The notes beneath the pieces were generated by a model that had not been told where the DNA came from, did not search any database, and saw nothing but the letters and a program-made list of their open reading frames with translations. This document shows positions 341 through 47,500 of a DNA stretch of 64,000 bases, piece after piece (position 1 is the first letter of the stretch; the number at the start of each line of letters is the position of its first letter). The stretch lies in contig NW_024704759.1 in assembly GCF_018977255.1 (NCBI RefSeq), positions 7,068,001 to 7,132,000 on the forward strand, in the 5' to 3' direction. A program made the position numbers and the translations under genes. The stretch comes from Callorhinchus milii. Its lineage: Eukaryota.

Positions 341-1210
341 TCACTGATCTGCACCTGGGAAATGCCGCTTGGATTGGGTCCTGGAGTTGTGGTTCAACAC
401 GAACTGCCCCCCTTTGAGACAGCCAGCAGTCCAGACCTGACAGTGACCCACTGGGGCCGGGGGCAGGGGCTTGGGCTGAGCGACTGACCCCCGATTGCTT
501 TGCCCGGTGTCTGAGGTCGCCGTCTCCGCCAATGACCAGATCTTGGGCTTCTGTGAGGGGTTCGATCCCATCTCCATCGCCACCATCTTCTCGCCCGACC
601 CTTGGTCCCTTGTCCTGGCCTCACCCTCGGGTCCTCTGCCTCTCGCCCCAGCCTTGCCCTCGAGTCCACAGCAAGGTCTCTCCAAACCCAAGGTACCTTC
701 ACAACCGCCGAGCGGGTGAGGGGGTGCCTGGTCTCTTTTATCCTTGTTCTTCTGATCTCCTCTCATCTCCACCTCCTCGTCCTCAACCTCCTCCGCCTCT
801 CCCTCCTCCTCCTCTTCCTCCTCCTCCTCCTCTCTTCTCTCCCCCTCCTCTTCGCTCTCGCTTTCCTCTGCGTCCGACTTGCTCTTGGGGACCCAACTCA
901 TCTTGTTCTCCTTCTTCAGGCGCCTCCGGGCGTTTGCAAACCAGGTGGAGACCTGGGTCAGGGTCATCTTGGTGACTATGGCCAACATGATCTTCTCGCC
1001 CTTGGTGGGGTAGGGGTTCTTCAGATGCTCGTTGAGCCAGGCTTTCAGGGTGCTCGTGCTCTCCCGGGTGGCGTTCTTGGCTCTCCCCGGGTCCCCGTGG
1101 GCCACCGGCCGGTAAGGAGAGTAGAGAGCGGCGGAGGAGAGGTTGGCGGCTTGCGGATAAATGGACTTCAACTCATGCGGATAAACCGACTTCAGCTCAT
1201 AGGGACAGGC
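341..1210 (-). CDS. irx7: Irx exon 2 (ACPYELK... homeodomain, IRO box, stop)
   Basis: Acceptor ctctctcttctctag|GCC at 1211/1210, in frame with ORF 341..1171. YELK motif as at the start of Irx1/3 exon 2. TGA at 343-341. Confidence 0.93.
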
Positions 1211-3393: not shown

Positions 3394-3407
3394 GGGTATA
3401 TATACCC
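3394..3407 (-). promoter_or_regulatory. Putative Irx TATA box (palindrome GGGTATATATACCC)
   Basis: The only AT-rich motif in a GC-rich stretch, about 45-50 nt upstream of the ATG. Confidence 0.6.
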
Positions 3408-3410
3408 TCC

Positions 3411-6190: not shown

Positions 6191-6265
6191 ATTCCCTTTT
6201 CCTTGTGCTGCCCATAATAAGGTAATCATATATAATCTTTGCATTTGACCCCAATAATAACAACA

Positions 6266-6557
6266 ATAATCCTTGCATTTGATAGAGCGCTTTTCACGTC
6301 TTCTGGACGTCCCAAAGCGCTTCACAGAATATACAGTAAAGTGAATTGACTGTATATTCGTGGGCCAAACGCGGCAGCCGATTGTGCACAGCAGCGTCCC
6401 CACAAACAGCCGTGGATCGAAGTGACCAATTTATTATCGTTTCTTTTCGAGGGATTATTACCGGGCGCGTGGGGTGAGGAAACCTGCCCGAGGGAATCGA
6501 ACCCAGGTCTCTCTCGCTCGCAAAGAGAGTGTTCTAACCACTGAGCTACAGGACTCC
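6266..6557 (-). mobile_element. tRNA-derived SINE (CORE-like, L2-type tail), GC-shifted copy
   Basis: Head GGAGTCCTGTAGCTCAGTGGTTAGA...GGTTCGATTCC with A/B boxes, and tail ...ATCAAATGCAAGGATTATT shared with many copies in the window. Confidence 0.9.
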
Positions 6558-23539: not shown

Positions 23540-26500
23540 CTGAAAAGTGAGACTGGGATGTTACATCATTTAAACAATGAAACAGAGAACAAAGGTAGAA
23601 CGCTAATTTTAATTAAATCTAAGTTTTGTAATGTACACACACAACAAATACACTAAAAATAAGGTGATGTAGTTTTTACCCCCAACACAAGAAAAGGTAT
23701 GAAAACTATTTATATAAGTTTTGTGAGTGGTAACCAGAGGATAAATAAATGCTTGTTGTGTGCAGATGATTGTTGTTCAAAGGCCTTTTAACATCAAATA
23801 TTAAAGGTCTAAATGGTAGAATCAAACAATTGTTTTTGCATAATTGGCAAAATCAATTGGTTAACTACTACAGTGTTAATATTTATCTCCAAAAAGTAGA
23901 CATCCAATTTTTGTGGCCAAATTTATTCCCTCCTGATTCTTTGCTGGAGTCTATATGGGTGTTGTTCACTCTTCAGTATTTCATCCCAGTCAGGACCTGT
24001 GACTTTCTACACTAAACGCTGCCATTACCTGCAATTGAGCATTTTAGACTTAAGATTTATCGAAAACATCATGCTCCACAATGAAAGCAATGAATACAAA
24101 TGAGAAAAGAGGCGTTACCTAGCAGCAAAAGTTCAGTACCTGATTAGAAAAGCAAATTCAAGAATTTCAGTTAGCATAATTTAAAATGTAAACTTTTAAA
24201 GGTAACATGCACCTCCATCTGTCATCACATTCTTTACTGGCAGCAAAGCATGGACTCGTTCTAATGGAATTCACGAGTGAGCACACCACCATGTTGGGTT
24301 ATACTGGTGATCAATAATTATTACTATTATTATTAGCTTGCTTTAATACCTGAACAGCAGACAACATTAATGACAGCAAAACTGAAAAGGGACCAGCAGA
24401 ATTAAAATGCACAGAATGGTAATTTTGTGAGTATTGATTGGCACAGCAGATCAGCTTAGATATCCCATGTGTGTTGCAAAACATTGCTTCTTAAACAGAT
24501 GCCAATGAACCTTTCAATTATAGTATATAACTAATGAGCAACAATAAAAAACTTTCATTAAATGTCACAACATTTTACAAACTACCAATTATGCTATTGT
24601 AACATATAGTGCATATAACATAGAACGTGTAAACAAGCTGTGTAAATGTGATTAGCAATTCTATGCAACATTACCTCGAATTAGCAGGTGTCAGCTTTGT
24701 ATTATACTTGCTAATATAGTGTATGTCAGCCTGGCGGAGTGGTAGCACTCAAGCCTAGGAGTCAGAAGGTTGTGGGTTCAAGAATAAAATGTTATTGAAT
24801 GCTTTGTAAATATCATACCCATATGTTTCAGAAAGCAATCCTATTATTGCTAGTGCTGAATGCGGTAAAAAGAAAAATTGCTGGATAACACCAAAAAAAT
24901 GCATTTATATAGCACCTATTATATCGGGAGAACATACCAAGGCATAACCACCAACCTGCCAGAACATTCAGGGGCTGAATTCCTCACACACTCTTGAAAA
25001 GAGCTATCCAAATCAATCCCGCTCTCTCCCCATAGCCCTGCAAACTTGTCTGCCCCAAATAATTGTCTATTTCTCTCTTAAAAGCTGTTATCGAGTCGGC
25101 TTCTACCACCCTTTCAGGCAATGCAGATCCGAACAACTCGCTGTGTGAAAAAATTTCTCCTCACCTCCCGTTTCTTTTAACAACTATTTTAAATCTGTGT
25201 CCTCAGATTACCAACCGACCTACCAGTGGAATTAGTGAATGACTAAACTGAATGTGATCAAAATAGTTTGAATCAGGTGCCATACCGCAAAGCCCCGTCA
25301 CCTTAATTGATCACATCAGTGACAACGCACTTTAGAAGAAAATTAAACTTGAATAAAATATCCACTAATTTGAATACCTGCAATAAGATTCAGCCATTAT
25401 TAGTGGTAAAGAACTTACGGGAAGAGATGTTTGAGGAACCACTAGACCCATCCTGGTCTTTCAGATAGTGAGCTGCAAATCGTCCACTATAGTCTCTCAC
25501 ATTTGTTTTGGCACCTGTTCAGGAAAAGGCAATATTAGACAATGCATTTACAAAACAATTCGCAAAAGCTACAGCGATGAAGTATTCATTAGTTTCACTG
25601 ACACAATTTAGTGTTAATGGATGAAGGAAAAAATTTCATGTTAAGCAACAGCTGGCTGGAACCTAGTACTTAATATGTAATAAAACTACAAAAGAAAACT
25701 TATTTAATTACTTTGCTGGAAATAATTTTAAACCATTAATAAAAGTACAGTACCACAGTATATAGGAAGTGCAGTTGAGTGAATAGCTTTCTCTTCAATA
25801 CTTTTTTCACCTCTTTATATTTCCTGAACTGGTTCAACTAGCACTATGTGCATCCTTCTACAGTATTTTCTCCCCACCGTCCCTCCTCCCTGCTGTCTCT
25901 TACAAAATCAAGGCCACGAAAATGGTTTTAAATTTAGAAACAGAAAGACAAAGGCAGTATGTTAAATGTGCTAGTCACACTGGTTCAGTATAGGCTTCTG
26001 ATCCAGTACAACAACAAGGCAACTAAGTTGAGCTCTGCCTTAAACTAGGCCTAATCCATACCTAACCCAGGAGTACTGGAGGAGGTCTGAGTTCAAAGCT
26101 GAAAATGGACCAGTAGGATCATCCCTCAACTTGAGGACAGATGGGCAAGAAGAAAATGTAAAAAGTGAGAGGGATCCAGAAAAGAGGTTAAAACAGGGAA
26201 AGGCAAATAAAGGGGATTCCTCCCCACCAAGATATTGTCCATACAAATAATTTGGCTCCTTGGCAAAGATATTGATGTACATAGTTATGTTTTACTAATA
26301 TGGGCATAATACAACAGATAATACATGGAAGGCAATGAATACCTCTCACTGAATTAAAATAGAAGAATTTAGATGGTGCAAATCATGAAAGTAACATTCA
26401 GATTCCAAACAAAGTACTTAAAGTAGGCTAAAATCTAAGTAGCTAAAAGACAATCCATCACATATACTATGAGTACTACTTGGTAAATCAAATCATTCAC

Positions 26501-29500
26501 TATTGAGTCTACGTACAGTTCAATAGGTTAAATGGGGGAGCTACTGTTGTGTGCACCTGTTGCAGCAATGAGTCTTGTCCTCAGATCATTACGTCCTGAT
26601 GGAGGAGGGAGATCAAACCACTGCTCCATCACCCATCGCTGGCATTAGCAGATAAATTGGTAGCGATGCAAATAAGATACAAACTTTTTTTTAGAAACAA
26701 TGAAGATAAAGTGACAGTAAGCAGTGTCCTGATGCTAACACAATGTACACGGACTTAAAGATTGGAATTAGAGCAAGTTTGCACTCAGCTGAATGTGATC
26801 CTTTGACAGCACCTGGAATTACATACAGAATCACTGCTAGGAATCACCATCATAATGAAAAAGTTCAGGTGGCATCAAACTGCAAAAGTGCCAACAATTT
26901 ACCTTCTAATTATGGAGGAATCTTCAACAATTTATTTATAAAGTACTGTACGTTTAGAAAATAGGGTTTATGTAGACATCAGCAGTGCTACATAATTGCA
27001 ATAAAATTCCTATCACATCACACATGCCAGGCTGCGCAGCAAAGCTCAGCACCTGTAGTGGGAAACAAACAGTGATAATGCAAAATTTCAATTCAAAATT
27101 CTTAATTAAGTTTGTTAATATCTTCTGAATATTAATTTCAGCCTTATTACAAGAATTATAATAATACAATCTTAATCTCATATCATGGGGACAAAAGGTA
27201 ACATTTTCAGTACATTGTGAAACATTCACATCAACAAGATGTGATACTAAATGTGCAAATCAGAAACTTACCATAGTTATTGATTAAAATGTCCATGATG
27301 TGTGTATGGGAATGAAGGGCTGCTATATGTAGTGGTGTGTAACCCTGAGAAAATAAATAATTATTTTTACTTCTATTTGCTAATGCCATGACAGTAATGT
27401 ACCAAATGACTTTTTTTTTAAAGACAAATAGGATACCTTTTATTTAGCTGACTACTAGATGACAAGCACTTTCACTAGATATCAAATCATGAAAGGGGGG
27501 AATATTGCCCTTGAAATCAGATGAATAAAAGGTAATTTATTGTATGATTTAATTCTTAATTTAGCACTGTAATCAAAATATCAAGTCACATAGAACTGGT
27601 TTCTCAAAGATCTTCAATACAAATGAGGCAAGTTTTAATTTTGCTGCTACAGAAAACATCCTGTGTTTGAAAGTGCTTGTAAATAAACAAGAAAAGGTTT
27701 GCCAGCCACACCACGTTTCAACATTAATTGCATTGGAACGTTTGCTTGGGAAAAAACAGTTTATGCTCCATTCTGAAAACTAGCGTTTGAACAAAAACCT
27801 TTTTCCCCCCATTGAGTCCCTTTCAGGTTTATAGAAAACTTGCAATTAATCCCAGTTGTAACATTAGATGCAAAATTAGAACATTCAAACAATAATTTAT
27901 CCTCCACACTATAGCGGAGTTGTCCAATAGGTTAGCTACGAGCCACATGTGGAAAATTGGGAATCCAGATGTGGCTAAATTGCATTTTTGATTAGTAAAT
28001 AAAAAATGAGAAATAGACCCCGCCATTGGGCATGTGATCTCAATTCTCCTTCTCGCACGATGGTGCATACTTTGATCTTTTTGTATGGTTGTTGGTAAAA
28101 TGGTAAGACGAAAAGCAGTGTGTGTGTTTTTTTTGATCATTGTGATTGCTTTACTTCCTTGGTTACTGCTGATTGGTGTGAAACACGGGTGAAAACCTTG
28201 TGAAAGAAAAATAAAGAGAAGACACGCCCCTACTCTGCATCCATAACACTGGGGGAAGCTGCTTGCCCTTTGCCATGACACCATGACTGAGACACAAAGC
28301 TAGAAGCTGTAGTAAGATGCACGGAGTCTGATAAATCCATGCCAGAATTCCAAACTTTGGTGAAAAAGAATGGAAAATTTTGCACTGAATGGTGGTAGAT
28401 GTTTGTTAAGTGAATATACATTGAAACATACATGTGAAATACCTGTATCGTGCGAGTGTCAAAAGGTGCGTTCTACTAAAATTAGTGTGTGTGGGTAAAA
28501 CGGTGTCGCAGCAATCACACTTGTGGTTATTCAGCGATTTCTATTGGACAACACTACACTATAGTACAAAGCACAATACATTTTATAAACAAAAAGCAAA
28601 TATTTTCTTAACATACTTTACACCCTTAATATTGCAGTGATATGCGATGAAAAGCAAAATAAAGTCAATTATCAAATAAAGAAGCAAAAAAAATGACAAA
28701 AAGTCATGCGATACTCACTCCCTACAACAGAAGCGAAAGACAAAACGATCATCACAAGTGGGGAGGGAAATAAAAAAAGTTGAATCAAACAATTGCTCTT
28801 TAAACAATTTCATTTAACACTTTTGAAAAACATTGTTCCATTTTGAGCCTCATTCCTGCTTCCCCCCCACCCCACCACATTTTAAGATTTTCAGGATCAT
28901 CATTAGAAATATTTTGTGCAACTTGCTCTAATGCCCGTAACATCCTAATGCCTATACAACATCACCCAACAGGGAGAAGTGTAGTTAAAGGGGGTGCAGA
29001 AAATGTCCACTTCTACCCAGGCAGCAGTGTTAAAGTAGGCTTGACCACTATTATTCTCACTCAATCCCACTGGCCAACTGCAGATCGAAATCAATAATTG
29101 TGGCTTCAATTAAAACTAGATTGACACCATCGTATTTAAATTTGATTGAAATCATGGTACGTTTTAACAATTTGGGAGTAATCTCTTCTCTTTGTACTTT
29201 GGCGGTGGAGAGAAGAAAGGCAACAAGTGCAGCTGGAAAACAGCTCTGTGACACACCATAAGTTACTTCTAAGAACTATGGAAGAGGATCTTCCAAGTCA
29301 AAACTTCCCTTCTCTCAGAGACCAAGTCAAGACTGAGAGGCTCAGCCACTCAGCAAAGGTTGAGAGTGAACATTAGCCAACTCAAACGTTAATATAGGTC
29401 AGAGATTGACCCCGTACTATTGTTGGTTTTAAATGTCATTTACTGAATATGTAGCCAATTGTAAGATTTGTTGTTTAATTTGTCATTCATTAGTTCTTGG

Positions 29501-32500
29501 TTCCCACTTTCAAACATTTACGTTCCTATTACTAGATTGAAACATAAGGAACTTAGTACCGGCTATTATTTCTACCAATTAAAAAAGCACTTTGAGGACC
29601 CACAGTTGTCAATGATAGTGTGCTCTGCGAAATATAAGAAATAAAATCATAATCACAATCTAAATTTAACAACAAAATCTGTGATTCATGCAAATAAATA
29701 AGAAGTTTGTTTGATTTGACTTACATGCTGCATTTATCCATCGATTAGCAGGGAGCAAAGAAAGAGGGAAAAAAAATCAGTTTTTTTAATTCATTGCAAC
29801 ATTATGCAATACCACAAACTAAAAGAATGGAATAAACATCTTAAGTGTATGATGAGTTCTGTTCAGCTGTCTCTGCTCCATCTCAATGATCTCCATACTC
29901 CATACAAGCCTGATCGGTACTTGGCTCTTGATGCTCATGGTTGATTGTATGTGGCCAAAGCAATATTCATTTCCTTAATTTGCCTTCTGCAATTCTGCAC
30001 ATATGTAATTCATTTCCATTATGTACAGTTTAAGTAAAAATTATGTAATTGTACTAAAACAAAGTAGGTGTGCGATTCTAATGAAAAATACGTAGAGTGC
30101 TTCAGAGTGAAACCTTTAAAGGTCAAAGTACACTGCTTTTTCCCATAGGGGAAAGAGAAGCAAGAAATGAAGACTTCAGATGTGGGATGTTGCTGTGTTT
30201 ATATTTCCCAATTGAGATGTGCTCTTGGCTCTCTGGTGTCCTGGTCACAAACATCTAGCTTTAATAGCAGATTGTAAGATTAAGAACCAGTAAGAATTAG
30301 TTACTGTAGGGGTTGAACTGGGAATGATCAAACAATATTCTAATAAAGAATAGTGATTAATGATTAGCATCAATCCTCATTTGTATTAATAAATGCCTAA
30401 CTATTATTTACCATTTTTACCTTGCCAGAAACAGTGGTTGTAAAAACAAAATGTACTGGTGAGCTGATTCACAGCCAAATATTAAATGTAAAATTGCAGA
30501 ATTGGATATGATTTAATATAATTCAACTAATTTTTGAATAAAAACAATTTAGATAGGAACAACTTCATGCCAATCTCCACGATCAGATTTTATTTTTTTG
30601 TGTAACAGTCAAGGCTTGCAACAGGAAAGCTTGTAAATCATTTCTTTATTTGAGTCTTACAAATCAGGAATAGAAAGAATTAGTTGGTTAAACTTTCAAA
30701 CTACTTGAAACGGAATGAAAAACATAACAGCTTTGTTTCGATCTCGCATAATTCCACTGTTCTGGCTCATAAAACATCTGTAAATTGTGGCTTTCTGTAC
30801 ATAAATCTATAGATTGAGTATTGTGCTTCCATGGATTCTGACAACTGAATGCAACTGGTAAATTAGAAACAAAAGGCTAATGTGGTTTTGTTTGAACATA
30901 GCTGTACACTTGACCAGGTTGTCAATATTGCATCACATCTTGGGCAAGAGAACAAACTGGTCACACATCTAATAACATAGAAAATATACTTCACATCCTA
31001 TTCTTAATTACCCTTTTTTAAAAAAGTAGTGATGAATTTAAAAACATTCACCATTAAAAATACTGCAACATTTGCAAATGACACTTTATGATGACACTCA
31101 CTTTTTGGCAAGACTAACAATAAAAACGGATGCTTTGCAGGTTTAAAAGAAAGTAAACTAATGTTTTGAGTTTTCACAGATTAACTAGAGTTTGCACAGC
31201 AGAGGAAGGCAGCATATGGAAGGCTAATGTGGTTGAGCACATAATAATAATCCTTGCATTGGATATAGCGCCTTATCACATCTTCGGGACCTCTTAAAGT
31301 GCTTCACAGAATATACTGAAAAGTGAATTGACTGTATATTTTGTGGGTGAAACGCAGCAGCCAATTACTCACAGCAGTGTCCTACAAACAGTCGTATAGG
31401 AGAGAACTAAAGTGCAAAGTTTTCTAATAAACGTGTAAAAATGAATTCATATAATACTGTAAATGGGTTTCACACTATAATCTGAAAGTCATGGGAGCCA
31501 CAGCATACCAAAGGACACAAGACTGTCTGTTGAATAGCTACTAAAGATGGATGTAAATCTTAGAAAACAAGAAAGCTTAGAAAGAAAAATATCGGACAAA
31601 AGATTCTTGCTAACACATTTGGCTGAGTAGCATATTATTTGGAAGGCGGAAGAATTACCTAAAGGTATTTTAGTTATACTGTATTTTAAAAGATTGAACA
31701 GAGAAAGAGGCAACTCACTGCTCTGCTGTTGATATCGACACCAGCCATTATTAACAGGAGCGCCATGTCCTCTTTGCCATGTTTAGCTGCCCAATGTAAT
31801 GCAGTCTATAAAAACAAATAACTTCATGTTAGAATACCAACAAACTTGTAACTAATAATATAATTACAGTATAGTCTACACAACACAAGCGTTCAACAAG
31901 TGTTACTGCATGCTTATTTGTGTTGTTCTTAGCATCAGAGATGAAAGTGAAATTTGAAAATAGCTGGAACAGTTCAACTTTTGAGGCACTACGCTATTAC
32001 CATTGGTTGATAGAATAAGAATTGCAGTGTTTGTATTTCTTGGTAATGGTGTGAAAAACACTACCTAATAAAGAGAAGTGAAGCCTACAGTGAGTACTTC
32101 CATTACTACAGTATTCTCCACATGTATTGTAGAAAGAAATCAAAGACCACCACCCACTCTTACTCAAGTTCACTTGAATTAACGGCCTTGCAAACATTCT
32201 CTCTCGCATGTGAGAAACGTTTTCAAAATGTTAGAATGAGGTTAAAAGAAAAAAAAGGGAACAGGGACAAAAAAAGCAAATAGAGGCATCGTTCTTAGAA
32301 TGTTTATTTAAATAGCATTTATTTTAGTGACTCGGTGCTAATATTACATTAAATTAATTATAGCATCAGAGTGCATGAACTAAAAACATGCAGAGACCCA
32401 AACGAGTATTTGAATAAACCTACCAGGACTCTAACAGTTATAAAAGATGGAAAGCCGCGGGGAAAACTTCCATTACTAGTAACTTTGTAGCTCGCTACCC

Positions 32501-35500
32501 TGGTACTTTGAGCATGTTCAATTTAGCAAATCATTTCCTCTCCCATGGAGATCCACAAATTCAAGACTATTTTTACAGTATAGTGTATTGCTAAACCAGC
32601 CAACTTAATTTCAAATCTCTGATTCCAACACCGATATATCCTTCCAATACTGTGAGGCAATAACGGAGATGCAGAACTAACTTTTCTCTTTCATTAATTT
32701 TGCATTTCATCTACACTCCTGCGACAGATCATTCATGCCTAAATAATTTAATAAATAAACACAAGTATTTCTGTGCCACACAGAAACACGTTGTGGATGG
32801 ACACTGTGTATTCCTCTGCTTCACCAAAACAGTAACCACTTTTTCACACAAGTTTTAGTTTTTCTGCATTTTTGATCCAATTTGTACTATATTTTACACT
32901 TGTGGTATTTACACTAAACGTGTTTTTCTGAAAACTAGTCCAGATTGTGGCAGCAAATCAAACAGAAAACAGCCTCCCTCGTACTCTGCAATGTTGTGTG
33001 GATGATTGTGGCCTTTTCTTACATTTTATTTTCTGTTTCCACTGGCGGGTGTGCAGGGCTATGGGGAGAATGCGGGGAGAATGGGATTGATTTGGGAAGC
33101 TCTTTTCAAAGAGCCAGTACAGACACGATGGGCTGAATGACCTCCTTCTGTGCTGTATAATTCTATGATTCACATAGCACCAGCTTAAAATTACCGCAGT
33201 ATTCACTTTCTTTGCACTTTTTATATCTGAATGAGATTTATAGATTTTTTTCCCTTGAATTAACATTAATGGAGATTCAAATATCAATTTGCACCAATTT
33301 AGAGATGATATTCCAGTCACATAATTTACACCTTATTTGCGTCATAAGCATTCACTAATAACTGTATTTTGCTGTAATACAGTTGCAAAACGCAATAGAA
33401 AATACGTCAAAAACTGCACCAAAGTACAAATTATTCAAATTCAAACAAATTAAAGGCCGAGTTTTTTGTTAAAAAAAACTACTAATGCACAAGACTGAAT
33501 AAAAGCAGGAATTAAAACTTCTACTGTAACAAAGGAATTTATAAACTTTTTAAAAGCAGCATTCTGAAAACTTTTTGCTATTGTACAATAATATATAATC
33601 ATTATTTTAAAATAAAGGCTAACATTTACCAAAGCGCACTGTTGCTGATAACCCTATGAAACGTGCCTGCCTATTACCAGCTGATCAGGTTATCTTTTCC
33701 CTGGAGCCCATGTGTTTGTAGTGCGCCGTCTGTTTCATTCTGGATATTTCCCTGAATTTGCCAGCTGCATAGGGAGTGTACATACGACATTTCCTGCACA
33801 TTCGGCCAAGCTAATTACAAAACAACAAACCAAGCGTGCCTCAAATGAAGCCAAGGTGTAAGTGCCTGTCAGGGCTGATGATTGATTATGTTTACTGCGA
33901 CCCATCGGCTGCTAGGAACAGGGCCCCAGTTATACTCCCAGCCAGTGTGAATGTCACAACTACAGCGTAATATTTATGTNAAAAAAATGATTTTAGTGAA
34001 TGAAAGAAAATCAAGGTAATTGCGAGGGACTCGTTAGACACCCATGAGAAGAAACATCCACTACCAGGCGATTTATTTTCACGAGACATTATTATTACCA
34101 TCACATCATAATTGAACATATTTTCTAATTGTCTCCCGCTAATCTAAATATACAATACGAGCTGTGTTTTGGACAGCGATTTATACAGTTTTACCCTAAG
34201 GTGTTGAGTTTGGTTGTTGATGCATGTGGCAAAGACATTACTGAAAGAGTATAAGATAGTTTTAGGATTCATTTGCACACTTATATATGAATACATATTA
34301 TACATGTATCTGACCATCATAGCCATAAACACTTTCTCTTGCACACTTGAATGTTTTTGGAACTTCCCCCAGAGGAAAGAGAAAACCACAAGAGCCCCCT
34401 GAGCCATTCACATGCCCCCTATTGGCTAGTCCGAAAATAATAATAATAATCCTTGCATTTTGATATAGCACTTTTCACGTCGGGAGGACGTCCCAAAGCG
34501 CCTCACAGAAGACACTGTAAAGTGAATTGACTGTATATTTGTTGGCGAACGCGGCAGCCAATTGCGCACAGCAATGTCCCACAAACAGTCGTAGATTGAA
34601 AATGACCAATTTATTATTGTTTTTGGTTTTTGGAGGGATTATTATTAGGCGTGTGGAGTAAGGAAACTTGCCCAAGGTTTCGCCCTGATCTGCCTGGAAT
34701 TGAACTCAGGTCTCTCGCTTGCAAAGCGAGTGCTCTAACCACTGAGCTACAGGACTCCGAAAATGGCATTAGAGGTCAAAGTATCCACAGTTCAATATTC
34801 AGGAGGGAAATCTAGAGTATGTATTCTTCAATTGGAGGGAAGCACTATCATCTAATCATATCAAACCTTTCCATTATATTATAATTTATGAACAAGTATA
34901 TCTTAAACTGAGTTCATCAATGAGTTTTGCCCAACTCCATGTGGATTGTATGTCTTTGCAAAAGAGGCTGATTCAGTACGAATGATCTAAGGGTAGCAAA
35001 CCACATCTTCTGTTTAGTTTCTTAACAGCCAAGTCTTCAGATTTAGGCTAACTGGGTACCAGTTTTTGCAGACTTCCCAGGGCAGAAGGTCTGCCTTGTC
35101 TGGTAGAATGAGTTACAGAATCAATGATTAAAGCTTTGGGATCTCCAAGTGTGAAAACCATTATCTTCTACATAAAGGGGAGAATTACAAAAGCCTCACT
35201 TGAGCAGAGCCCAGCAGAGTGAGGAAGGAACTGAGTGAGGTGGAACAGAGTGAGAATTCTGTTAAGGAATTTGGTGAGGGGGAAGGCGGTGCAGGTGTTG
35301 CAGAAATTGTGAGATGTTTGCCTTCCAGGCCAAATTTTGAATGGATTCATCTGCATTAACTGAAAGCTAGTAGACTCACTCAAGGCTGAAGTGATCAGCC
35401 TTAGCAAGCGACTGGCTATGCACCAAAGTATTAGGGAGGGAGAAGAGTTTATGAATGATGTATTAGAGAAGACCTTGCTGGGGGCACAGTAGAGGAGTCC

Positions 35501-38500
35501 CCGGTACCTAGAGGAAAGGATTGGGTCTCTGTTAGGAAAGGGGCCAGAAGTCGTGGTCGGCTAATGGAGCAGGAACGGACATCCCTGGTGCTCTCCAACA
35601 GTTTTTCTCCTCTGGAGAGAGATGATATGGAAACCCAAGTGATGGCTGAGACAGGCAAGAGAGTGTGGTGCACTGAGGCAATCCAGCAGCCTGCCAAGGA
35701 AGGAGGGAAGAGAAAGAGTAGCAGACAAGTTGATATTAGGGGATTCGACTACTCGGTTCACAGATCGCATTCTGTGCAAGCCAGACCGCCAGGAAGGTGG
35801 AAGGCGAACTAGATGGACCTTGGTTTTTTTGCGTCTAGCATTTCTTATGTTCTCTGACAGAAAACAAACCCAGTTTTCATTAGCACAATGCTATTTTAGA
35901 TAATAATCTGAGGACGTTCAGTATACAGCAACATTTTATGTAAAAAGATTCAACAAACCATTTGTTTCTTAAAGCAAAAAGTTCAAATAAACTCACTTCA
36001 TGAATATTTTTCTAATTAGCAAATGTGGATTATACTTACAAACTTTTGTCAAGCAGTATCAAAAAAAGGTATTTTTTGAACATTGGAGAAATTGGCCATA
36101 ATTCACAAGTTTCCAGAAGATGTGCATTCAGGAAATAAAAGGAAAAACAAGTTATTAGTCAGAACACACTTTGTTTTCAGTACAGTGCATATAAAAAATT
36201 TAAACTTCTGAAAAACGCAGTGCTTGGACGACAGACATCATTCTAAACCCAATTTGTTTTTCATGTTTGCCTTTTAGCAATGATCATTGGAGACTGAGAA
36301 GGAATGGGAACCTTTGTTGATTTTTTCTTCTGTAACCTGTGAAGGCAAACTAGTGTCTCAACTACTGTCTCAAATGAGATTGCTAACTTAGACAAGACAA
36401 GACTGGGTATTGGACTATGACCTTCCAGGGTATAGAAATTTGTGTTGCACTACAAAATAAATTTGTGTCTTCACTACAAAAGTCCTTTTCAATATCTTAA
36501 TTTTATTTAGACTTTTTAAAAAAGAACATTCTAATTCTTTCTCCTAAACCTAAACTTCAAAAAACATTTATCTTTTTTTCAGCTTCCATCACGTAGTTTG
36601 GGGAAAAAACAGCCTTACACCTAATGACCAAGTCAAGATATTGAAGAAAGACATTGTCACATCATATATTCTGCACAACCAGGTCAATCATTGATTGGCA
36701 CTAGGCGAGATCACAGGATGAAAAGAAAAAAGATTTTTTTTAAAAAAAAGATAAACAGAAAAAAAATCATAACTAGTTGGGTGCGTCTGTCGATAGCATC
36801 TTAAGTATTAAGAAAAAGATTGCATACTCTGACTCTTATATGGGGTCAGAGTGCCAGTACCATCACTTTGTCAATCAAGAAACAAGCACGAGAGCACAAG
36901 TCATTTTGTTTCTCATCAAATTGTGACATTATTCTGAAATAATTAGGAAAGTGCATTCTCTGAAGCAGAACTTAATGACTGAAATCACTGGTATACACAA
37001 GAATTTAAGCATCTTCAATATCACAGTTCATCTATACAGTAAAAATAGCATTAGAATGGTCATTCGCATTGCGTGACACGACTCCAAAGCTGATCACTGA
37101 AAGAATACATCAAAGACCAAGACAGACACTTGCTGAACTTAATTCCTCTCAACATGAGGTTCTCCTACTCTTAATGTAGATTCTCTTTTATCTATTATTT
37201 GCAGATTAATTGAAAGACCAGGATTATCCTTGCAGAAGCTATAGGAACCAATAATCTTTCGCACATCAGTCACAACTATGTATTTCGTCAGCTACTGAGG
37301 TGGAGCTGGTTTGCTGTGCCATCACGCAGAAGGTGATTTTTAAAAAAAGTTATTTTTTTACAGCTAACACCCTTTTTACTTAAATTCGAGTAAAAAGTGT
37401 TAAGGTTTATTTTAAATAACTAAATTCTGTCGAGTCACAACAGAAAGGGCAAAACAATGTAAACCATGTTTCTCTTAAATCTAAAAATAATAAGGACTTC
37501 GGGGAAGACCCTGCATCAAAACAGAATCATTGGCTGGAGAAGCCCTTTTATGGGACAGAAGAGGGCATGATTGGTTTCAGCTTTGTGTGCAGCTGCTGAT
37601 GTTCTCAAAAACAGCCCTGGCTTTGCCAGCAAGTGCCAAACATTGAAAAAGTTGGTAGAAATAAAGTTTGAGGATATTTGTATTGAAAAGCTAGGCAACA
37701 CCAACAATATAAAACAATCTAAAACAGTTTGAATTTTTATTTCTTACTATCAATATATGAATAAAAATGGATGGAGACGGGAAGAGTCAAATTGCGATTG
37801 ATTTGACAGCGAACTCCAGTCATTCACAAGCGGTTTCGGACTGTCAATCAGTAAGGGGCGGAGGAACAGGGAAGAAACAAAGGAGGGAATCGTGACTGAT
37901 TGACAGCTGGAGTAATGGGTGCCCATCCATTCACAAGCACGTTCAGGCTGTCAATCACCTGGGCAGGTAGAGAACTTTGGTTAACTTAGGACGGCGCTTA
38001 AACCGGACAAAACTGCCACAGGCGTGTCAGGCTTAAGCGGCTTCCACTGTATTTACCAAGGATGAATATATTTACTCATGTTTAAAGTAGGTTACAAGAC
38101 GAGTTGAATTACATGTCATATGATTTTCCAAAGTGGTTAAAATACATGCGTCAGGATTCCCTGAACACAAACAAACCTGAAAAAAAAATGTTAATCGGCA
38201 GGCACTTACCCCCTGATATTGGTCACATTGTTCCAACATTGGATGCCAAATACATCACATCCATTCCATTCCCAGCAGGACAGGAAAAAAAAAGAGCAAA
38301 ATACTTTTCAGTGAGGAAGCTATATACAATATATGTAAAGGAACAGAAGAATAAATATTCCTGAACCATCAGAGATTGAGACAAAACATGCAAAAATACA
38401 TTAAAGGCCATCATTATTGTAATACTCAGAATGCATTACACACAAAAGTTTCACATTAAGAACAAGTTTAAGTACATATTGAATACAGATTTCTTCTATT

Positions 38501-41500
38501 TACAATGTACAACAATGTTTATACACGCACATTTTACAGGTACATGGGAAAATCTGAGAAATGAAACAAAAATTCAATTGGCTACCAACCTCTAAATAGC
38601 AAGATAAATAATTTACATTCTTGTTCTTCTAACATACACACTTCAGTACATTAAACAGAATCTTGTTCAAAGTCACAAATTGTAAAATGCAGTAAAACAC
38701 ACTCAAGTGCTTTAACGTCTAACTTATGATGAAATAACAAGCTGATTGGGATATAAACTAAGTGAACGTGTAAAGTAAATTCAAGATAATGGATTCAGCA
38801 TTCCAAGCAAGCGGTAGAGTATGAATGATGTCACTTACAGAGGTGAAGTCCTAAGGGTTTTCAATCAAGAATATATGCAAAATAAAAATAAAAAAACAAT
38901 ACCTTTATATATTATCGAGGTCGCATACAAAGCATATTACCTGCAGTTACCTGCACATTAGCATAAACATGCTATATTTAATATCCCATTTAATGTGGCA
39001 AACAGATGTTGAATTTGCACATTAATTCCTGTAAATCAGACACCTGTCCAGAACACAGTAACTTATTTGCATTAAAAAAGTACAATGCACATGGTCACGC
39101 TTCAGTTGTGAAATTCTTCCCCTTTTCTCGGTCAATTGAGAGAATACACCTCCCATCACTGATCACCTTATATTTAAAGCTATAGATTGTGATTTATTTA
39201 TTCACTGAGCCACTGGGAAAGTTCCCAACAATTCTTAATATGACAAATGTCAATTTTAATAGATATTTAATTAAGAGTTATATGCATTTAAAACAAGTTT
39301 GTGGAATGTAAGTTCAAACATGTAAAAACACATTTTATTGGTTAATCAATGATTTTGTATTTTGGGAAAAGGTGTCAATTTTTAATTCATCTGTCCAATT
39401 TATAAAGAGGTAAATTTGCCTCATCGTCTACCTTTTTCACCGCCAGAGATGGATCCTGACTGAGAAGATCAGTCAAAGCTGCTAACTGTCCACTTGCTGC
39501 ACACTTCAGCCATTCCTTTTCCAAAGGATCCAACTGTAAAAATGAACCAAGCAGAAGTACAGCCCATTTAAAGCACAATTCTTAAAATCAATGAGAATGT
39601 TATCCTACACACAGATCAGTTTTAATGCAACCCAATGGAGTACAATTCACAAGAAAATGCTCCAGACTAACATACCCAAATTTTGAGGATGACTGAACAG
39701 CCCAAGGTGTTGGAACTTCAGCACACTGTACCACATACTGTCATAATGCTGAATAGTGTTCATAACTCCCACCTACTGAGCTCCTGATCTCAACCACAAC
39801 ATGAAGATGTGGCAAGCAGTTGCCAGGCACTTTCCCACAGCAAAGATGGAAAATCTGAGCCTCATCAGCCCAGGCTACTTCAGTGTACCTCCTGGCAGGA
39901 AACTCCGCATTGGGATAGTAATGAGATCAGGTTTGGCCAGGATAGGGCATAACACAGGAACAATTGATAGGAATAGGAAGAAAACTAATTTAGAAATAAT
40001 ACATAACAGGAAGCCTAATTTATACTTCAGCCACTATCAGCCACAATCTGCAAATAGAAGAGTCTAAGACAAATGTGACTTTTTGCTGTACCATAACCTC
40101 AAATTCCACAACACACTAATAATAATGATTATGGAGTATTGCTTTAAGAGCAAGCAGAGTCATTCTTTTTCCAGTTGCAGTGCTCCAAGGATCAAATAGC
40201 GTGTTTATATTACCAAGTCTATGCCGCAATATGTCCAGGATAGATTGCTGTCTCGCATGAATGGTGAAGTAGAGACCCACCCACCCCACCATTGGCGGGA
40301 GAGCCTTCAGCCACTCTGCGCCCAACCTCTGGAATTCCATCCCCAAGTCACTCCGCCTCACCCCCTCCTTAAAGTCCCCACCTCAAGACCCCCCTCTTCG
40401 ACTATCCCATCGGCCACCACCCTTGCCCTCCCTTACCCCCCCAAACCCCAGTTCGGGTCTGAAATGCTGTACTCTGTCCAGCGCCTTGGGACGTCCTCCC
40501 GACGTGAAAGGCGCTATACAAATGTAATCTTGTGGTTGTTGTAGTAGAAATCCAGCTGAATTATGCACTTCAATCTCATCAACATGAAAACTTATTCTTT
40601 GGGGTATGTTTCATACTGGTATGAGTTTGGAAGCACTGCAATGTAAACTTGGCAAGATCCCAAGCTTGTTTTGTCGACTGTTTTAAACAGTGAGCCTTCT
40701 GTCTGCGTGGATTTTGTTTTCAGAGATGACTCCGCTTATGGACATGCAAGTTCTAAAGACCTGACCTGCCAGGAGGGTTTACATTATGTAACAAATCATA
40801 AATGTTAATTGTTCAAAATTACATATACGTACCATTAATATGAAACTAATCCTCTTCCCATTTTATAGAATGATTTCACTTTATGTTTACTTCCCTGGCA
40901 TGTCTACCTCTTCCCTGTTCCATCTCATCAGTTTCTTACTTGATCACTTTGAATGCACGTGTACGTGAATGGCAGTCAAAACACACAATCCTTACTTTTC
41001 GACTCCCGCTGAGAAAGAGCAATGTGAATGGAGACAATCCACCTCATTCAGTATTCAAAACAGACATTGCACTAGCATGCTAATTATGCCAACTCTGGTA
41101 TCCGTTTGGAGTACTAAGCTTTCTGAACTCTGGCAATGTCTGAATAATATGCTCTCAAAAGTAGTTCTGAACATTCAAGGTTGTGCCCATCCTTATACAG
41201 AACCACATCAATAGCACAAGCTAGTCCACAATCAGAAGGGGAAACTTCAGTCTAACCTGAAGCACTTCAATGCCAGGGCAATGCCTCAAATTATTAGAAA
41301 CTAAAATCATAAATTTTAGAAATGTCAGCTTTTTGAAATGCTGGACTGTGTAATGTAACACTACTTGAATCAGAGTGTTACCGCAGAGAAATAGGCCATT
41401 CTGTCCATCTAGCACGTACTATTTTATGGCAAAAAGTTAGTGACCCATTTTCTCAGCCACAATTTATTACCAAAAACAGGGTATGATTTGTCCTAGACTG

Positions 41501-44500: not shown

Positions 44501-47500
44501 ACAGTCGTAGATTGAAGTGACCAATTTATTATTGGGTTTTTTTGAGGAACTATTATCAGGCGTGTGGAGTAAGGAAACTTGCCCAAGGTTTCGCCCTGCT
44601 GGGAATCAAACCCAGGTCTCTCGCTTGCGAGGCGAGTGCTCTAACCACTGAGCTACAGGACTCCACGACAAACATCGATGATGTGAGTGACCAGTTTTAT
44701 TGGGGGATTGTTGTCCAGAACACAGGGAGAAATCTCCTTCTCTTTTCAATATAGTGGCATGGAATCATTCACATTCACCTGAACAGGTAGATGGAACCTC
44801 AGTTAATGTCATAGAAGAACAGCACCTCCAATATTGCTGCATTGCAGCATCAGCAACATGGATTCCAAGCCACACTATGAGGCTTGAAACCACAACCTTC
44901 TGACTTAGAGATGAGAATGCTACCAAATGAGCTAGGCTGGCATACCTCTTCAATACCTTTAACACAATGTTTGAAATGAATTAGAAACTGATGGGAAATG
45001 GCAATTTCCTTGGATTTAAAACAGGGTGTATTCACTAAAACCTATATCACAGAAAAAATGTGCAAAATATTGTAGTTTCACGCTCGGCTTGTAGGCAAAG
45101 ACTGGCCGACAAACCAGTTTCAAAGCAGTTGTTCCCCATTTTTAAAATCATGTAAACTTTGCAAGATATACATCAGCAAAGTCCTGCCTGAAAACTTTCC
45201 TCTTTGAGCATGCTTACAGCCACTTCCCCCCACCTCCCGGTTCGGAATCAGGCTCCGCCACTGTTAAGTGCTCTGAGACGTTAGCCTGCATGGTGGGCGC
45301 TATATAAGTGCAAGTTGTTGTTGTATTTTAGGGAAAAAAAAATAATCACTTTATTGGTCTCTTAATTAGCCAACTTCAAGATAGTTTTTTGTAATTCCCT
45401 TGACTGTTTTAATTACAACTGATTTTTCATAATTGGAAGTTTTACATAAATTACAAATGAACAAAAAATCACGGCATGACTGAAAAGAACATAAAATCAG
45501 ATATAAAGTAGGTTGTTGGCAGTATCCCAGTCAGGTTTAGCTTTTGTCCCTGTCTGATGGATTCTTGCATAACATTATTATTGACAGAGTTAAAGTATTA
45601 GGGGCAGTTTTTGATGTGCCCAGTAATAAGATCTAATTTGCTGATCATTTTTTGCAATCATAGTTGCTTTAATGTCACCACTTTAGTGTAATTGCTTGTT
45701 GGAATAATATACTGCACATCCATAAGGCCGCTTTACACATTCCCAGAATAAAATTTATTCAGTATCAAGGGATTACACCGAGACTTATTCACTGCATCCC
45801 ATTCAGCGACGATTGACCCAATGCTAATGAAAACAGATCCTGGCGGACTATTAACAAGCTTGGCTCATGCCTTTATGATGAATGATCTTTCAAAATCTGT
45901 ACCCGTGCAAAGCTGATTTTACACTTACTGTTCTAAATATATTTCAAAATCAATAAGTTAATAAATCAATAACAAATTCAGGACTTGCTCACAAAACAAT
46001 GTTTACCTTTTCCCTGTGTAAGTATAAAGAGTGTTTACAGTGGTGCCAAAACTCAGTGCGACACTCATACTCCAATTTATGTGTCTGTGCATGCTTACTT
46101 CAAACAGCCCATTGAGCAAGTGACTGACTGACTTGACATTTGCTTTCCATGTAAGCACCTTCAGATGTCTACCATCAGATGTCTACAAAGGTACTTTCAA
46201 ATATTCTCTACCATTCTCTGCTAAGTATTCTCAGATGTTTGCTTTACTGGGTTAGTCTTTTCTTCAGATCACCACATGTTAAAGATGAGTTACATGAATT
46301 GAACAGTATTACATAATAGGGAGCTCAATGGACATAGTAAGAGCATTATATTGAAAGTAAATGCTGATTAGAAATGTGCTAACATAGCTGTCATCACTCA
46401 AAAGTTTGGATGAGATCATAAAAGCAAGAGTGAAGCTCAAGCAATTTAGGTAAAGGGATTTCTTAATTACAAAATCTGAATGAGAAAATGACTGTTTTCA
46501 TTTCCAATTCGTAGAAGGTGCATATAATGAGTCATGTCTAGATAACAGTAAGAATGAAATATTTTGTGTGTTCACAGCATAATTTTCAGCTATAACAATC
46601 AAAATATCCAACTCCATTTTGTTGTAAACAACTTTGATCAAGTTAGTTATCATAGGGAGAATATAAGAGGGTATGGGGACAGCAAGGAATTGGGATTACA
46701 GTAGTAAGAATTTTTACATGAGGTACCATCAATTTAGTTTGAAGGGTCGAGTGGCATGATGTAATTTCTATGATGAGAACTGGAACTTCAATAAATACTT
46801 ACAGCAACAGATGCCGACTCGATACTTCCATCTTCAAATTGATTCTGGTCTGAATCGTCCTAAATGAAACAAAAAATACAGCTATAAAGATTTTCACTTA
46901 AGTACATCACTTATTTTACGGTTGAACTTTTATTACCTTCGTTTTTGCCAAATGCCAGCAACAGCTATGTCTAATATATATAAAGTAGATTTGCAAAAAA
47001 TATACAGGACATTTAATACATTGCAAGTTTCAAATCCATCAATATAACAAACGCAACACTCATTTAGAAACACTAAAAAAAATTGTAGCTTTTCTGTGAG
47101 GTCGCGGTATGCTAAAGGATATTCCTCTTTTAATTATAACTCTATATTTTAGTTTTCCTGTGACGCACATTATTCTCCGACCAAGAGCTGGTGGCCAGAT
47201 TTCTACCTATCCCAAGGAGGTAAAAACAGTATTCCAGAATTACTCAAATCATCCTTAATTTCTCTCCAATTTCCTACTCAAACCATCTCTTGAAGCAAAC
47301 TATTCTAGTGCATGACTCCAAAGATGCTGGGATGCAAATATTAGTGGGTTAATTTTCACACAACCAGCAATTCTGATCATGTTCTTTTCCAACATCAATT
47401 CAATCACGCTTCCAGCAAAGGTCCCCCAAAAGCATTCAGAAACAAGAACCCTATTTGGAGATACTAAGGCTAACTGCGGAACCTGCATTACAACTATCAG

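Follow-up and report, generated by a model that had tools for sequence, protein, structure and literature searches.

The window, which is the whole 64 kb stretch of DNA that was analyzed, carries a Callorhinchus milii gene of the Sowah type that is interrupted by introns, and we focused on the ankyrin-coding middle of this gene. The gene is located on the minus strand, consists of 15 coding exons, five of which are microexons (Table 1), and stands head-to-tail with an Irx homeobox gene, upstream of which it lies. The ten middle tblastn blocks are 100% identical to XP_007910542.1 (P0019, C. milii), and the first and last blocks are 97% and 98% identical to it. In exon 1, at the C run around positions 63343-63345, the window holds one C beyond what the frame of the protein records requires. 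The Irx-Sowah linkage is present: about 22 kb separates the Sowah stop codon from the downstream Homeobox_KN exon, and both genes are on the same strand. Irx enhancers within Sowah introns reportedly count as a class feature of this block.

The precomputed Pfam list of XP_007910542.1 and its orthologues includes the SOWAHA-C winged-helix domain PF25877.1; PF25877 was not listed in our local Pfam scan of the C. milii record UniRef V9KW91 (P0131). In an AlphaFold2 model, residues 15-89 form a compact helix-strand domain with a block pLDDT of 89-96. The ankyrin pair is recognized by Pfam Ank in two stretches (E 8.2e-16) and by Ank_2 over residues 252-344, and the motifs LHWAAKHG and GYT.LH are invariant across an alignment of 39 sequences. 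Most of the 120 matches listed are named SOWAHA, B, C or D(-like) in NCBI or UniRef, and the C. milii records bear the names SOWAHB(-like) or "ANKRD43-like". The SOWAH paralogue letters are inconsistent from species to species.

Table 1. Coding exons of the Sowah-type gene, AG-free stretches at the microexon acceptors and the neighbouring homeobox exon
Feature	Positions	Strand	Description
Exon 1	63204..63349	-	Winged-helix N-terminus; tblastn
Exon 2	58543..58604	-	62 nt; tblastn and boundaries
Exon 3	57497..57802	-	306 nt; tblastn and boundaries
Exon 4	53479..53625	-	147 nt; tblastn and boundaries
Exon 5	46803..46859	-	57 nt; tblastn and boundaries
Exon 6 (exon A)	39432..39533	-	102 nt, LDPLEKEW...SLAVKK; donor AAG|gtagac; 100% tblastn to P0019 residues 240-273
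m1	38839..38850	-	12 nt, GAC TTC ACC TCT = DFTS; tag|GACTTCACCTCT|gtaagt
m2	38210..38212	-	3 nt, GGG = Gly280 of P0131; cag|GGG|gtaagt; Pfam Ank position 2
m3	36040..36042	-	3 nt, TTT = Phe281; aag|TTT|gtaagt
Exon 10 (exon B)	31719..31805	-	87 nt, ends DINSRA; ankyrin repeat 1 core; 100% to P0019; RNA-like contigs
m4	29725..29727	-	3 nt, CAT = His311; cag|CAT|gtaagt
m5	28719..28721	-	3 nt, GGA = Gly312; tag|GGA|gtgagt
Exon 13 (exon C)	27272..27344	-	73 nt; ankyrin repeat 2 start; tblastn, RNA-like contigs
Exon 14	25419..25514	-	96 nt; tblastn and boundaries
Exon 15, coding part with stop codon	23358..23539	-	tblastn and boundaries
AG-free stretch, m1 acceptor	38853..38902	-	50 nt
AG-free stretch, m2 acceptor	38215..38303	-	89 nt; distal polypyrimidine run
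AG-free stretch, m3 acceptor	36045..36168	-	124 nt; UGC at -13
AG-free stretch, m4 acceptor	29730..29818	-	89 nt; U/C-rich run, then UGC at -5 (also -23, -30)
AG-free stretch, m5 acceptor	28724..28795	-	72 nt
Iroquois-type (TALE) homeobox exon, neighbour gene	341..1171	-	Pfam Homeobox_KN, E 2.4e-18

Microexon sites and the ankyrin fold

The five microexons (12, 3, 3, 3 and 3 nt) are all in phase 0, and 5/5 lie between an AG acceptor and a GTRAGT donor. The original prediction had placed these sites on the minus strand, and their coordinates and letters occur in the window exactly as it gave them; the flanking exon ends that it assigned (39432, 31805, 31719 and 27344) are also correct. Its estimate of about 12 kb of intron for 24 coding nt agrees with the 24 nt found within 11,976 nt of intron. 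Moreover, its spliced reading (... INSRAHGGYTPLH) is found exactly in V9KW91.

The pattern AG-NNN-GTRAGT occurs eight times on both strands of the window, compared with 3.93 occurrences expected from shuffles. The minus strand holds six of the eight, of which four are m2-m5 and another coincides with the real exon 2 donor, and m2-m5 are the only such sites between positions 27000 and 39600. Across the 11,976 nt that make up the seven introns, 0.37 sites would be expected, and the Poisson probability of at least four is 0.0006, a value computed before requiring the right codons in the right order. The site pattern exceeds chance.

One 33-residue ankyrin repeat is assembled from 3+3+87+3+3 nt, with DFTS-G-F supplied before exon B and H-G supplied after it. 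Exon B itself covers Pfam Ank positions 4-31 of 33 (E 2.3e-07), and exon C covers positions 2-24. Pfam assigns G280 and F281 to Ank positions 2-3, and G313 takes position 2 of the repeat that follows. AlphaFold2 modelled the ankyrin region with a block pLDDT of 84-96; in this model, K274-S279 and residues 302-315 (including H311 and G312) are non-helical, and a helix begins at G280 according to DSSP, which places G280 and F281 at the helix start. The residues encoded by the microexons are predicted by this model to provide the inter-repeat loop of the ankyrin domain.

Transcript, protein and orthologue records

Contigs aligned over positions 27200-31900 (exon B to exon C) came from four runs, whose RNA nature is a guess and which are called RNA-like here. 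The joint from exon B to exon C (31719 to 27344) was bridged by contigs in three of the four runs, from three different studies: X4 (1810 nt), X5 (1374 nt) and X8 (181 nt). The contig of the fourth run ends before this joint. An insert of CATGGA had been predicted between the two exons, and it was found there in all three studies. Each of the three bridging contigs carries six extra letters, TCCATG on the plus strand and CATGGA on the gene strand, which are m4 plus m5, and matches the exons of the window with 0 other letters. Read depth lies on the exons, not the introns, in X4, X6 and X8. No direct join of exon B to exon C was present among the contigs listed for the four runs; contigs drop rare variants, so minor skipped isoforms could go unseen.

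V9KW91, which we take to be a cDNA-derived record, contains all eight residues encoded by the microexons and reads KKDFTSGFTALHW and SRAHGGYTPLH. Its N-terminus departs from the window by a two-residue repeat; therefore, this record was not simply read off this assembly. Two C. milii RefSeq models contain m1-m4 and lack the m5 glycine, and a further UniRef record of the species contains m1 only, with DFTS present in 4/4 C. milii records and DFTSGF in 3/4. The RefSeq form without m5 could in principle be a real isoform, but it was seen in no bridging contig. The supposition that the array was probably unannotated was right in part: the two RefSeq models already contain m1-m4 and miss just m5, and V9KW91 has all five. 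The array is largely in databases already. Outside Maeso et al. 2012, which according to the original prediction may have noted microexons in intron-containing Sowah genes, we found no published description of this array. With m4 and m5 seen directly in RNA-like contigs and m1-m3 through protein records, the five microexons are very probably real and spliced into the mature mRNA.

Among orthologues assembled from transcripts (Logan transcript ORFs), DFTSGF and HGG are complete in 7/7. Gene predictors had been expected to miss these exons, and of the 88 annotation-derived orthologue records that span the two junction regions, just five are intact at each of them. The losses in genome-based models affect G by itself in 31 records, F by itself in 7, the two together in 4 and the whole DFTSGF in 10, which implies that each is probably a separate exon. 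Residue-by-residue drop-outs span sharks, rays, lungfish, caecilians, paddlefish, gar and teleosts, and such patterns in protein models imply that the microexons are probably separate in other species too. We infer that the array dates from the ancestor of jawed vertebrates. In eight of the 25 records listed (sharks and rays), DFTS follows exon A and is itself followed by VS, which reads into the intron. Many NCBI "isoforms" carry this VS, which is a translated GTnAGy donor and a mark of modelling artefacts.

Acceptor architecture and alternative explanations

Microexons have near-consensus donors and a polypyrimidine tract and branch point farther from AG (10.1101/2024.09.17.613571), and steric hindrance may be eased by an extended distance from the branchpoint to the 3' splice site (PMC12871342). 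The AG-free zones of the 3-nt Sowah exons are 72-124 nt long, compared with 11-52 nt (median 23) at nine ordinary exons (Mann-Whitney p 0.003), and AG-to-AG gaps of at least 70 nt make up 1.6% of those in the introns of the gene. Exon length and AG-free zone length gave a Spearman rho of -0.61 (one gene, 14 acceptors). The polypyrimidine tract close to AG is poor at m2. UGC occurs upstream of the m1 acceptor at -29 only, and none was found within 60 nt of AG at m2 and m5. The long AG-free zones of the single-codon exons are new here and, judged from sequence, suggest distant branch points.

We propose that single-codon splicing is probably enabled by a perfect GTRAGT donor, by 72-124 nt free of AG at the acceptor, and by a polypyrimidine tract and branch point that lie far from it. 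U2 and U2AF2 would bind far upstream of AG and would thereby avoid collision with U1 on the donor 3 nt past the acceptor. The first downstream AG would then be selected, and the introns would then be removed stepwise. This steric model was derived from one gene with 14 acceptors, and its branch points are predicted. We further speculate, tentatively and with less than even confidence, that the four single-codon exons escape the ordinary mode of exon recognition, that a 72-124-nt AG-free "surrogate exon body" defines each of them instead, that zone length trades off against exon length, and that the constitutive array is ancestral to jawed vertebrates and is the densest run of single-codon exons yet in an animal gene. 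The surrogate exon body would consist of the distal branch point and polypyrimidine tract and would close with a consensus donor 3 nt past the first AG. If true, the gene would provide a natural system to probe the lower size limit of exon recognition.

The same acceptor layout, with consensus donors, a displaced tract and branch point and a long AG-free zone, is like the published SRRM3/4 type, and the microexons might instead be regulated SRRM3/4 (eMIC)-dependent cassettes that are included in neurons, endocrine cells or photoreceptors. In-frame skipping, singly or in combination, could then tune the ankyrin surface. Any skipping of the five phase-0 exons would stay in frame, and several NCBI isoforms per species differ at exactly the microexon residues, but many of these are the VS artefacts described above. 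UGC lies at -13 of m3 and at -5 of m4, following a U/C-rich run, whereas the 60 nt before AG are free of UGC at m2 and m5. Moreover, m4 and m5 are both in all three bridging contigs from three studies, with no skipped joint listed, and the transcript assemblies of other species are complete (7/7). The residues include a near-invariant ankyrin glycine, and skipped forms would harm the fold. Regulation of this kind seems unlikely to us, and we infer that microexon inclusion is constitutive.

It is very improbable that the extra letters of the mRNA come from other genomic pieces, such as TTT at 31844 or exons of 1-2 nt. The 18-nt insert has one alternative three-piece solution, which uses TTT at 31844, and both inserts have several solutions of three to four pieces that use 1-2-nt pieces. 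However, 31844 is the only alternative TTT site, and its use would leave an intron of 36 nt ahead of exon B, with gttggt as the donor; the 1-2-nt solutions need non-consensus donors (gtgtac, gttaaa, gtcaag), whereas every proposed site combines a GTRAGT donor with a long AG-free acceptor. The m2 site is used only by solutions of at most three pieces, and m4 plus m5 is the sole split of CATGGA into at most two ordered pieces flanked by AG and GT. The contigs and protein records might also derive from a processed, intronless copy elsewhere, with the intronic triplets being coincidental, and the title of Maeso 2012 indicates that retrogene copies are a known feature of the Sowah family. Nevertheless, four sites with the right codons in the right order were seen where 0.37 were expected by chance, the contigs fit the exons of the window with 0 other letters, genome-based models of many species lose exactly these residues one at a time, and two RefSeq models built on the C. 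milii genome place m1-m4. We regard a processed copy as an extremely improbable source.

Comparison with known systems

The SOWAH protein P0005 of the skink Lerista edwardsae has the same architecture as the C. milii protein and the same motifs at the microexon residues; the two proteins share 50% identity in the ankyrin part and 46% in the N-terminal domain (BLASTP). The motifs that the original prediction had cited from intronless SOWAH proteins, including NARTSGGYTALH, are present in this tetrapod member. The tetrapod SOWAHA-D genes are reportedly retrogene-derived, as the title of Maeso 2012 has it. Recursive splice sites are AG|GTAAGT ratchet points, in which the acceptor and a consensus donor are almost juxtaposed. 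The Sowah sites share the near-juxtaposed signals and a long intronic interval that is likely removed stepwise. However, recursive sites keep zero nt, whereas the Sowah sites keep three translated nt each and are exons, not ratchet points.

Similar to SRRM3/4 (eMIC) microexons, the Sowah microexons are very short in-frame exons with near-consensus donors, a displaced tract and predicted displaced branch point, a long AG-free zone and, at some sites, a UGC near AG. They differ in that they appear constitutive, as the bridging contigs and transcript assemblies are all complete, and in that a single gene contains four tandem exons of the smallest coding size. Their AG-free zones of 72-124 nt also far exceed the median branchpoint distance of 45 nt given for neural microexons (PMC12871342). 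A longer AG-free region, far beyond the usual ~40 nt, is likewise a property of distant-branch-point exons (PMC1431707); that class was established with human exons of ordinary size, whereas in Sowah the feature tracks exon length within one gene.

Single-codon exons are described in the available portions of reports on cytohesin-1, where a 3-nt exon is alternatively spliced (PMC6314551), on MAP4K5 (PMC8632122) and on RPS24, which has three alternatively spliced microexons of 3, 18 and 22 bp (PMC12207440). Similar to Sowah, a 3-nt exon in these genes contributes a single residue or a very short segment, and standard aligners miss it. In contrast, as these portions present them, the three genes have one 3-nt exon each, whereas Sowah has four and a 12-nt exon flanking one 87-nt exon, and a canonical ankyrin repeat is complete only with all of the Sowah microexons.

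Plant microexons of at most 15 nt, in the available text of their report, are constitutive, ancient, coding and absent from reference annotations; two microexons can be neighbours (5 nt and 12 nt in rice), the tiniest exons have a conserved GTRAGT donor, and sizes go down to 1 nt (PMC8831610). Where relatives have lost introns through reverse transcription, the plant microexon is subsumed in a large exon (PMC8831610). These plant exons resemble the Sowah array in its GTRAGT donors, its misannotation, its apparently constitutive use and its probable ancient origin, although they belong to another kingdom and to other genes, and that text describes microexon pairs, whereas Sowah has a run of five (PMC8831610). 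Overall, the Sowah array belongs to a known class, the microexons, and is a striking example of it.

Gene identity and microexon sites

When exon 1 alone was compared with a representative library, 11 matches were obtained (P0001, P0008, P0009 and the 44-residue match P0006 were left out), and these led to Sowah-type proteins. The best full-length match, used as a second query, gave 557 relatives, the best 120 of which are nearly all SOWAHA, B, C or D(-like) by their NCBI or UniRef names. Natural database proteins (P0019, P0131 and others) were used for exon placement and for the protein analyses. The Callorhinchus milii RefSeq model P0019 (XP_007910542.1) matched the window by tblastn at 100% in ten middle blocks and at 97% and 98% in the first and last, and, once placed, it divides into 15 coding exons that span 63349 to 23358 on the minus strand. 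The same strand carries an Iroquois-type TALE homeobox exon, the ORF at 341-1171 (Homeobox_KN, E 2.4e-18). Given these two placements, we identify the gene, on sequence grounds, as an intron-containing Sowah gene adjoining an Irx gene. Pfam searches with exon 1 alone or exon A alone returned no significant family, and the winged-helix family, which the precomputed Pfam list gives, was absent from a local Pfam scan of P0131. PMC3342872 and PMC5010895 refer to Irx-Sowah solely in terms of linkage or of conserved non-coding elements.

The original prediction placed five microexons in the introns of this gene, and the minus-strand sequence is identical to it at all five places, as well as at the ends of the neighboring larger exons (see table).

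Microexons (m1-m5) and neighboring larger exons of the C. milii Sowah gene, in gene order; slashes mark exon borders, and the last column gives the AG-free stretch upstream of the acceptor
Feature	Residues	Position	Strand	Sequence	AG-free stretch
Exon A (exon 6), end		39432	minus	...GTG AAA AAG/gtagac	
m1 (12 nt)	DFTS	38850-38839	minus	cccttag/GACTTCACCTCT/gtaagt	50 nt
m2 (3 nt)	G	38212-38210	minus	atatcag/GGG/gtaagt	89 nt
m3 (3 nt)	F	36042-36040	minus	acaaaag/TTT/gtaagt	124 nt
Exon B (exon 10)		31805-31719	minus	tatag/ACT GCA ... AGA GCA/gtgagt	
m4 (3 nt)	H	29727-29725	minus	aaatgcag/CAT/gtaagt	89 nt
m5 (3 nt)	G	28721-28719	minus	gttgtag/GGA/gtgagt	72 nt
Exon C (exon 13), start		27344	minus	ctcag/GGT TAC ACA ...	
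Nine ordinary exons					11-52 nt, median 23

The pattern AG-NNN-GTRAGT occurs eight times in the 64 kb window on both strands, compared with 3.93 expected from 100 shuffles. The minus strand holds six of the eight, of which four are m2-m5 and one is the true donor of exon 2; between 27000 and 39600, m2-m5 are the only minus-strand sites. Across the seven introns (11,976 nt) the expectation is 0.37, and the Poisson probability of at least four sites is 0.0006, a value that leaves aside the requirement that the codons be correct and correctly ordered.

Repeats were also observed in the window. Between the Irx exon and the rest of the window, at about 2800-6400, lies a GC-rich stretch of ~3.5 kb (GC 0.52-0.57) whose strands are strongly skewed (GC skew down to -0.57). 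Several frames are open on both strands, with ORFs of 880-1160 aa that consist of short repeated units, and the stretch therefore looks like a long simple or minisatellite repeat. A second GC-rich repeat, at about 62100-63000 in Sowah intron 1, gives proline-rich repeated ORFs when read on the plus strand, and GGLDSG-type repeats when read on the minus strand. Finally, a short interspersed repeat at 31241-31395, in the intron between exon B and m4, shows summed contig depths of 3,000-210,000 in all four public sequencing runs compared, with many variant letters and loose ends; since similar ORF strings occur at many places in the window, we regard it as a highly abundant SINE-like family in RNA contigs.

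Evidence from RNA contigs, protein records and the ankyrin fold

The contigs of four public runs (X4, X5, X6 and X8) were compared with window positions 27200-31900, their status as RNA resting on a labelled guess and on exon-only depth: X4, X6 and X8 have depth on the exons and none on the introns. In three of the four runs, from three different studies, one contig spans exon C into exon B (1810 nt in X4, 1374 nt in X5 and 181 nt in X8), and in the fourth the contig ends inside exon C. The CATGGA insert predicted to follow exon B is present in all three bridging contigs (TCCATG on the plus strand), which otherwise match the window with zero other letters. No direct join of exons B and C is listed among the contigs of the four runs over 27200-31900, contigs being assemblies that drop rare variants. 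When CATGGA is cut into ordered intron pieces flanked by AG and GT, CAT at 29727 plus GGA at 28721 is the only solution of two pieces or fewer, and the remaining solutions require 1-2-nt pieces and non-consensus donors.

For m1-m3, the relevant records are four C. milii proteins that fall in one 90% cluster. P0131 (UniRef V9KW91, 428 aa) holds the residues of all five microexons, including INSRAHGGYTPLH; the RefSeq models P0019 and P0129 (XP_042197829.1) contain DFTSGF and H and lack the m5 glycine; and P0130 (A0A4W3JPQ6) has DFTS alone among the microexon residues. The N-terminus of P0131 differs from the window by a two-residue repeat, and P0131 was therefore not simply read off this assembly. 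The V9K-series UniProt entries of C. milii are, we presume, derived from mRNA submissions. The 18-nt insert has just two solutions with three or fewer pieces; one is m1+m2+m3, and the other takes TTT from 31844, leaving a 36-nt intron with the donor gttggt. Through these protein records, the use of m1-m3 in mRNA is indirectly supported. The expectation that the set was probably unannotated does not hold for m1-m4, which are in C. milii RefSeq models, nor for the full set, which is in one UniRef record, and stands for m5 in the RefSeq models seen.

Ten residues of the protein seemed unplaced, and further microexons were considered for them and rejected, as an ordinary 96-nt exon at 25514-25419 encodes them. 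At the other end of the gene, just after the exon 1 ATG, positions 63343-63349 (minus strand) hold one C too many for the frame of the C. milii protein records, so that the ATG frame as written departs from the conserved frame; the extra C is either an assembly/homopolymer error or a polymorphism. The N-terminus of the newer RefSeq model, XP_042197829.1 (306 aa), is identical not to exons 1-3 but to an ORF at 57054-57209 (minus strand), just downstream of exon 3 and adjoining LINE-like ORFs; frameshifted exon 1 seems to have been bypassed in this model.

The microexon residues occupy defined positions in the ankyrin fold. Of the 33 Ank positions in Pfam, exon B alone covers 4-31 and exon C alone 2-24; in the full protein, the match begins at G280 (m2), which is position 2, and the next repeat begins at G313, again position 2. 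S279, G280 and F281 are positions 1-3 of repeat 1, A310 and H311 its positions 32-33, and G312 is position 1 of repeat 2, so that one 33-residue repeat is encoded as 3+3+87+3+3 nt. An alignment of 39 sequences underlies the AlphaFold2 model of P0131, in which a confident N-terminal helix-strand domain (residues 15-89) is followed by a disordered middle and an ankyrin part with block pLDDT of 84-96. In this model K274-S279 and residues 302-315, including H311 and G312, are non-helical, and the DSSP helix begins at G280, which would place G280 and F281 at the helix start. On these assignments, the description of ankyrin hairpins built from microexons is a fair one. The SOWAH motifs cited in support of it also hold in a skink family member (P0005, Lerista edwardsae), which has the corresponding motifs at the same places, including NARTSGGYTALH; the residues are continuous in this tetrapod protein. 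The C. milii gene would show what was erased in reverse-transcribed Sowah copies.

Orthologous junctions and their misannotation

Junctions were classed in the best 120 of the 557 matches, comprising 7 Logan transcript assemblies and 113 other records, with 'full' defined as [DE]F[TI][ST]G[FW] at junction 1 (between exons A and B) and [HDSYN]G at junction 2 (between exons B and C). Twenty-five of the 113, which are truncated or divergent models, were left outside the denominator (19 without both junction regions, 4 without junction 2 and 2 without junction 1). In the transcript assemblies (contigs of 2.2-2.8 kb), both junctions are complete in 7/7, junction 2 reading [SAD]HGGYTPLH. Gene predictors had been expected to miss these exons, and they largely do: both junctions are complete in 5 of the 88 annotation-derived records, junction 1 alone in 13, junction 2 alone in 26 and neither in 44; in principle, an 'incomplete' entry may also reflect a genuine isoform or a difference between species, with no error involved.

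The forms of failure are telling. Among the best 120 of 557, junction 1 reads DFTSF (without G) in 31 records, DFTSG (without F) in 7, DFTS in 4 and nothing in 10, besides assorted read-throughs, and junction 2 reads HG in 37, nothing in 32, H alone in 10 and VS in 10. VS is the translation of GTAAGT or GTGAGT, and the predictor therefore ran 6 nt into the donor to fill the length. Eight of 25 records listed, from sharks and rays, read KKDFTS and then VS into the intron, where the sequence stops. The locus is represented by two annotated proteins (P0132-P0143, P0146, P0147) in Leucoraja erinacea, Chiloscyllium, Heterodontus francisci and Lissotriton helveticus, one N-terminal (274-437 aa) and one C-terminal (105-133 aa); the break between them appears to fall at the microexon cluster. 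Because single residues would drop from genome-based models only if each is encoded apart, we infer that the microexon array is present in chimaeras, sharks, rays, lungfish, caecilians, paddlefish, gar and teleosts. Among the amphibians, the same residue-by-residue drop-outs were seen in the caecilian relatives P0033, P0035, P0036, P0041 and P0072, and the P0032/P0147 newt cluster includes a transcript-assembled copy; some amphibians thus seem to retain the microexon-bearing gene.

In practical terms, m5 is missing from the annotation models seen and the family is mis-modelled in most species, which makes it a clean, verifiable case of systematic genome-annotation failure. A simple search would mend the models across the family: AG-NNN-GTRAGT after a long AG-free zone, in the right order.

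Acceptor architecture and a putative splicing mechanism

All five microexons have GTRAGT donors, yet none ends in three nucleotides close to the CAG/AAG consensus. Where ordinary exons of the same gene end in CAG or AAG, the intronic half of the donor is weak (gtacag, gtcagt, gtagac). The exceptionally long AG-free acceptors are what is new here, and they are the biological point. Only 1.6% of the AG-to-AG gaps in the introns of the gene reach 70 nt; the AG-free zone differs by exon class (Mann-Whitney p 0.003), and its length correlates with exon length at a Spearman rho of -0.61. For m2, m3, m4 and m5, the end of the zone farthest from the acceptor holds pyrimidine-rich runs. The long zones suggest that the branch points of the single-codon exons are distant. 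Apart from the donor consensus and the absence of AG, the flanks of the five microexons shared no sequence motif that could be seen by eye.

We propose a mechanism in which exon size is the constraint. On a 3-nt exon, U1 pairing (donor -3 to +6) and U2AF1 at the AG could not coexist. With a distal branch point and polypyrimidine tract, U1 could stay on the donor while U2 and U2AF2 assembled 70-120 nt upstream, and the second step would use the first AG downstream. Removal of one flanking intron would then leave the microexon as the end of a normal-sized exon, so that the seven introns could be removed stepwise. A 33-residue repeat split in this way would be an extreme natural test for exons too short to hold U2AF and U1 together, and the long AG-free acceptors turn the proposal into a concrete hypothesis, testable by mutation.

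The same acceptor layout would also fit inclusion under SRRM3/4-type regulation; in m4 a U/C-rich run precedes a UGC at -5, and m3 has UGC at -13. However, neither m2 nor m5 has a UGC within 60 nt, all bridging contigs and all transcript assemblies are complete, and the residues include a near-invariant ankyrin glycine. We consider such regulation unlikely, and stop short of a firmer rejection because minor forms are lost from contigs.

The steric proposal can be set beside what has been described elsewhere. Microexons, 3-nt exons, adjacent microexons and the misannotation of all these are known already; published examples are 3-nt exons in cytohesin-1 (PMC6314551) and MAP4K5 (PMC8632122), RPS24 microexons of 3, 18 and 22 bp (PMC12207440) and plant microexons with GTRAGT donors (PMC8831610). 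No description of the Sowah array was found in the main texts searched, a scope outside which Maeso et al. 2012 falls; among microexons, the array is an extreme case. A parallel exists with neural microexons, for which two reports give a polypyrimidine tract and branch point farther from the AG, with donors near consensus (10.1101/2024.09.17.613571), and a median branchpoint distance of 45 nt versus 34 nt, with a proposed relief of steric hindrance (PMC12871342). Neural microexons deviate in the same direction, and the published effects are much smaller than those of the Sowah array.
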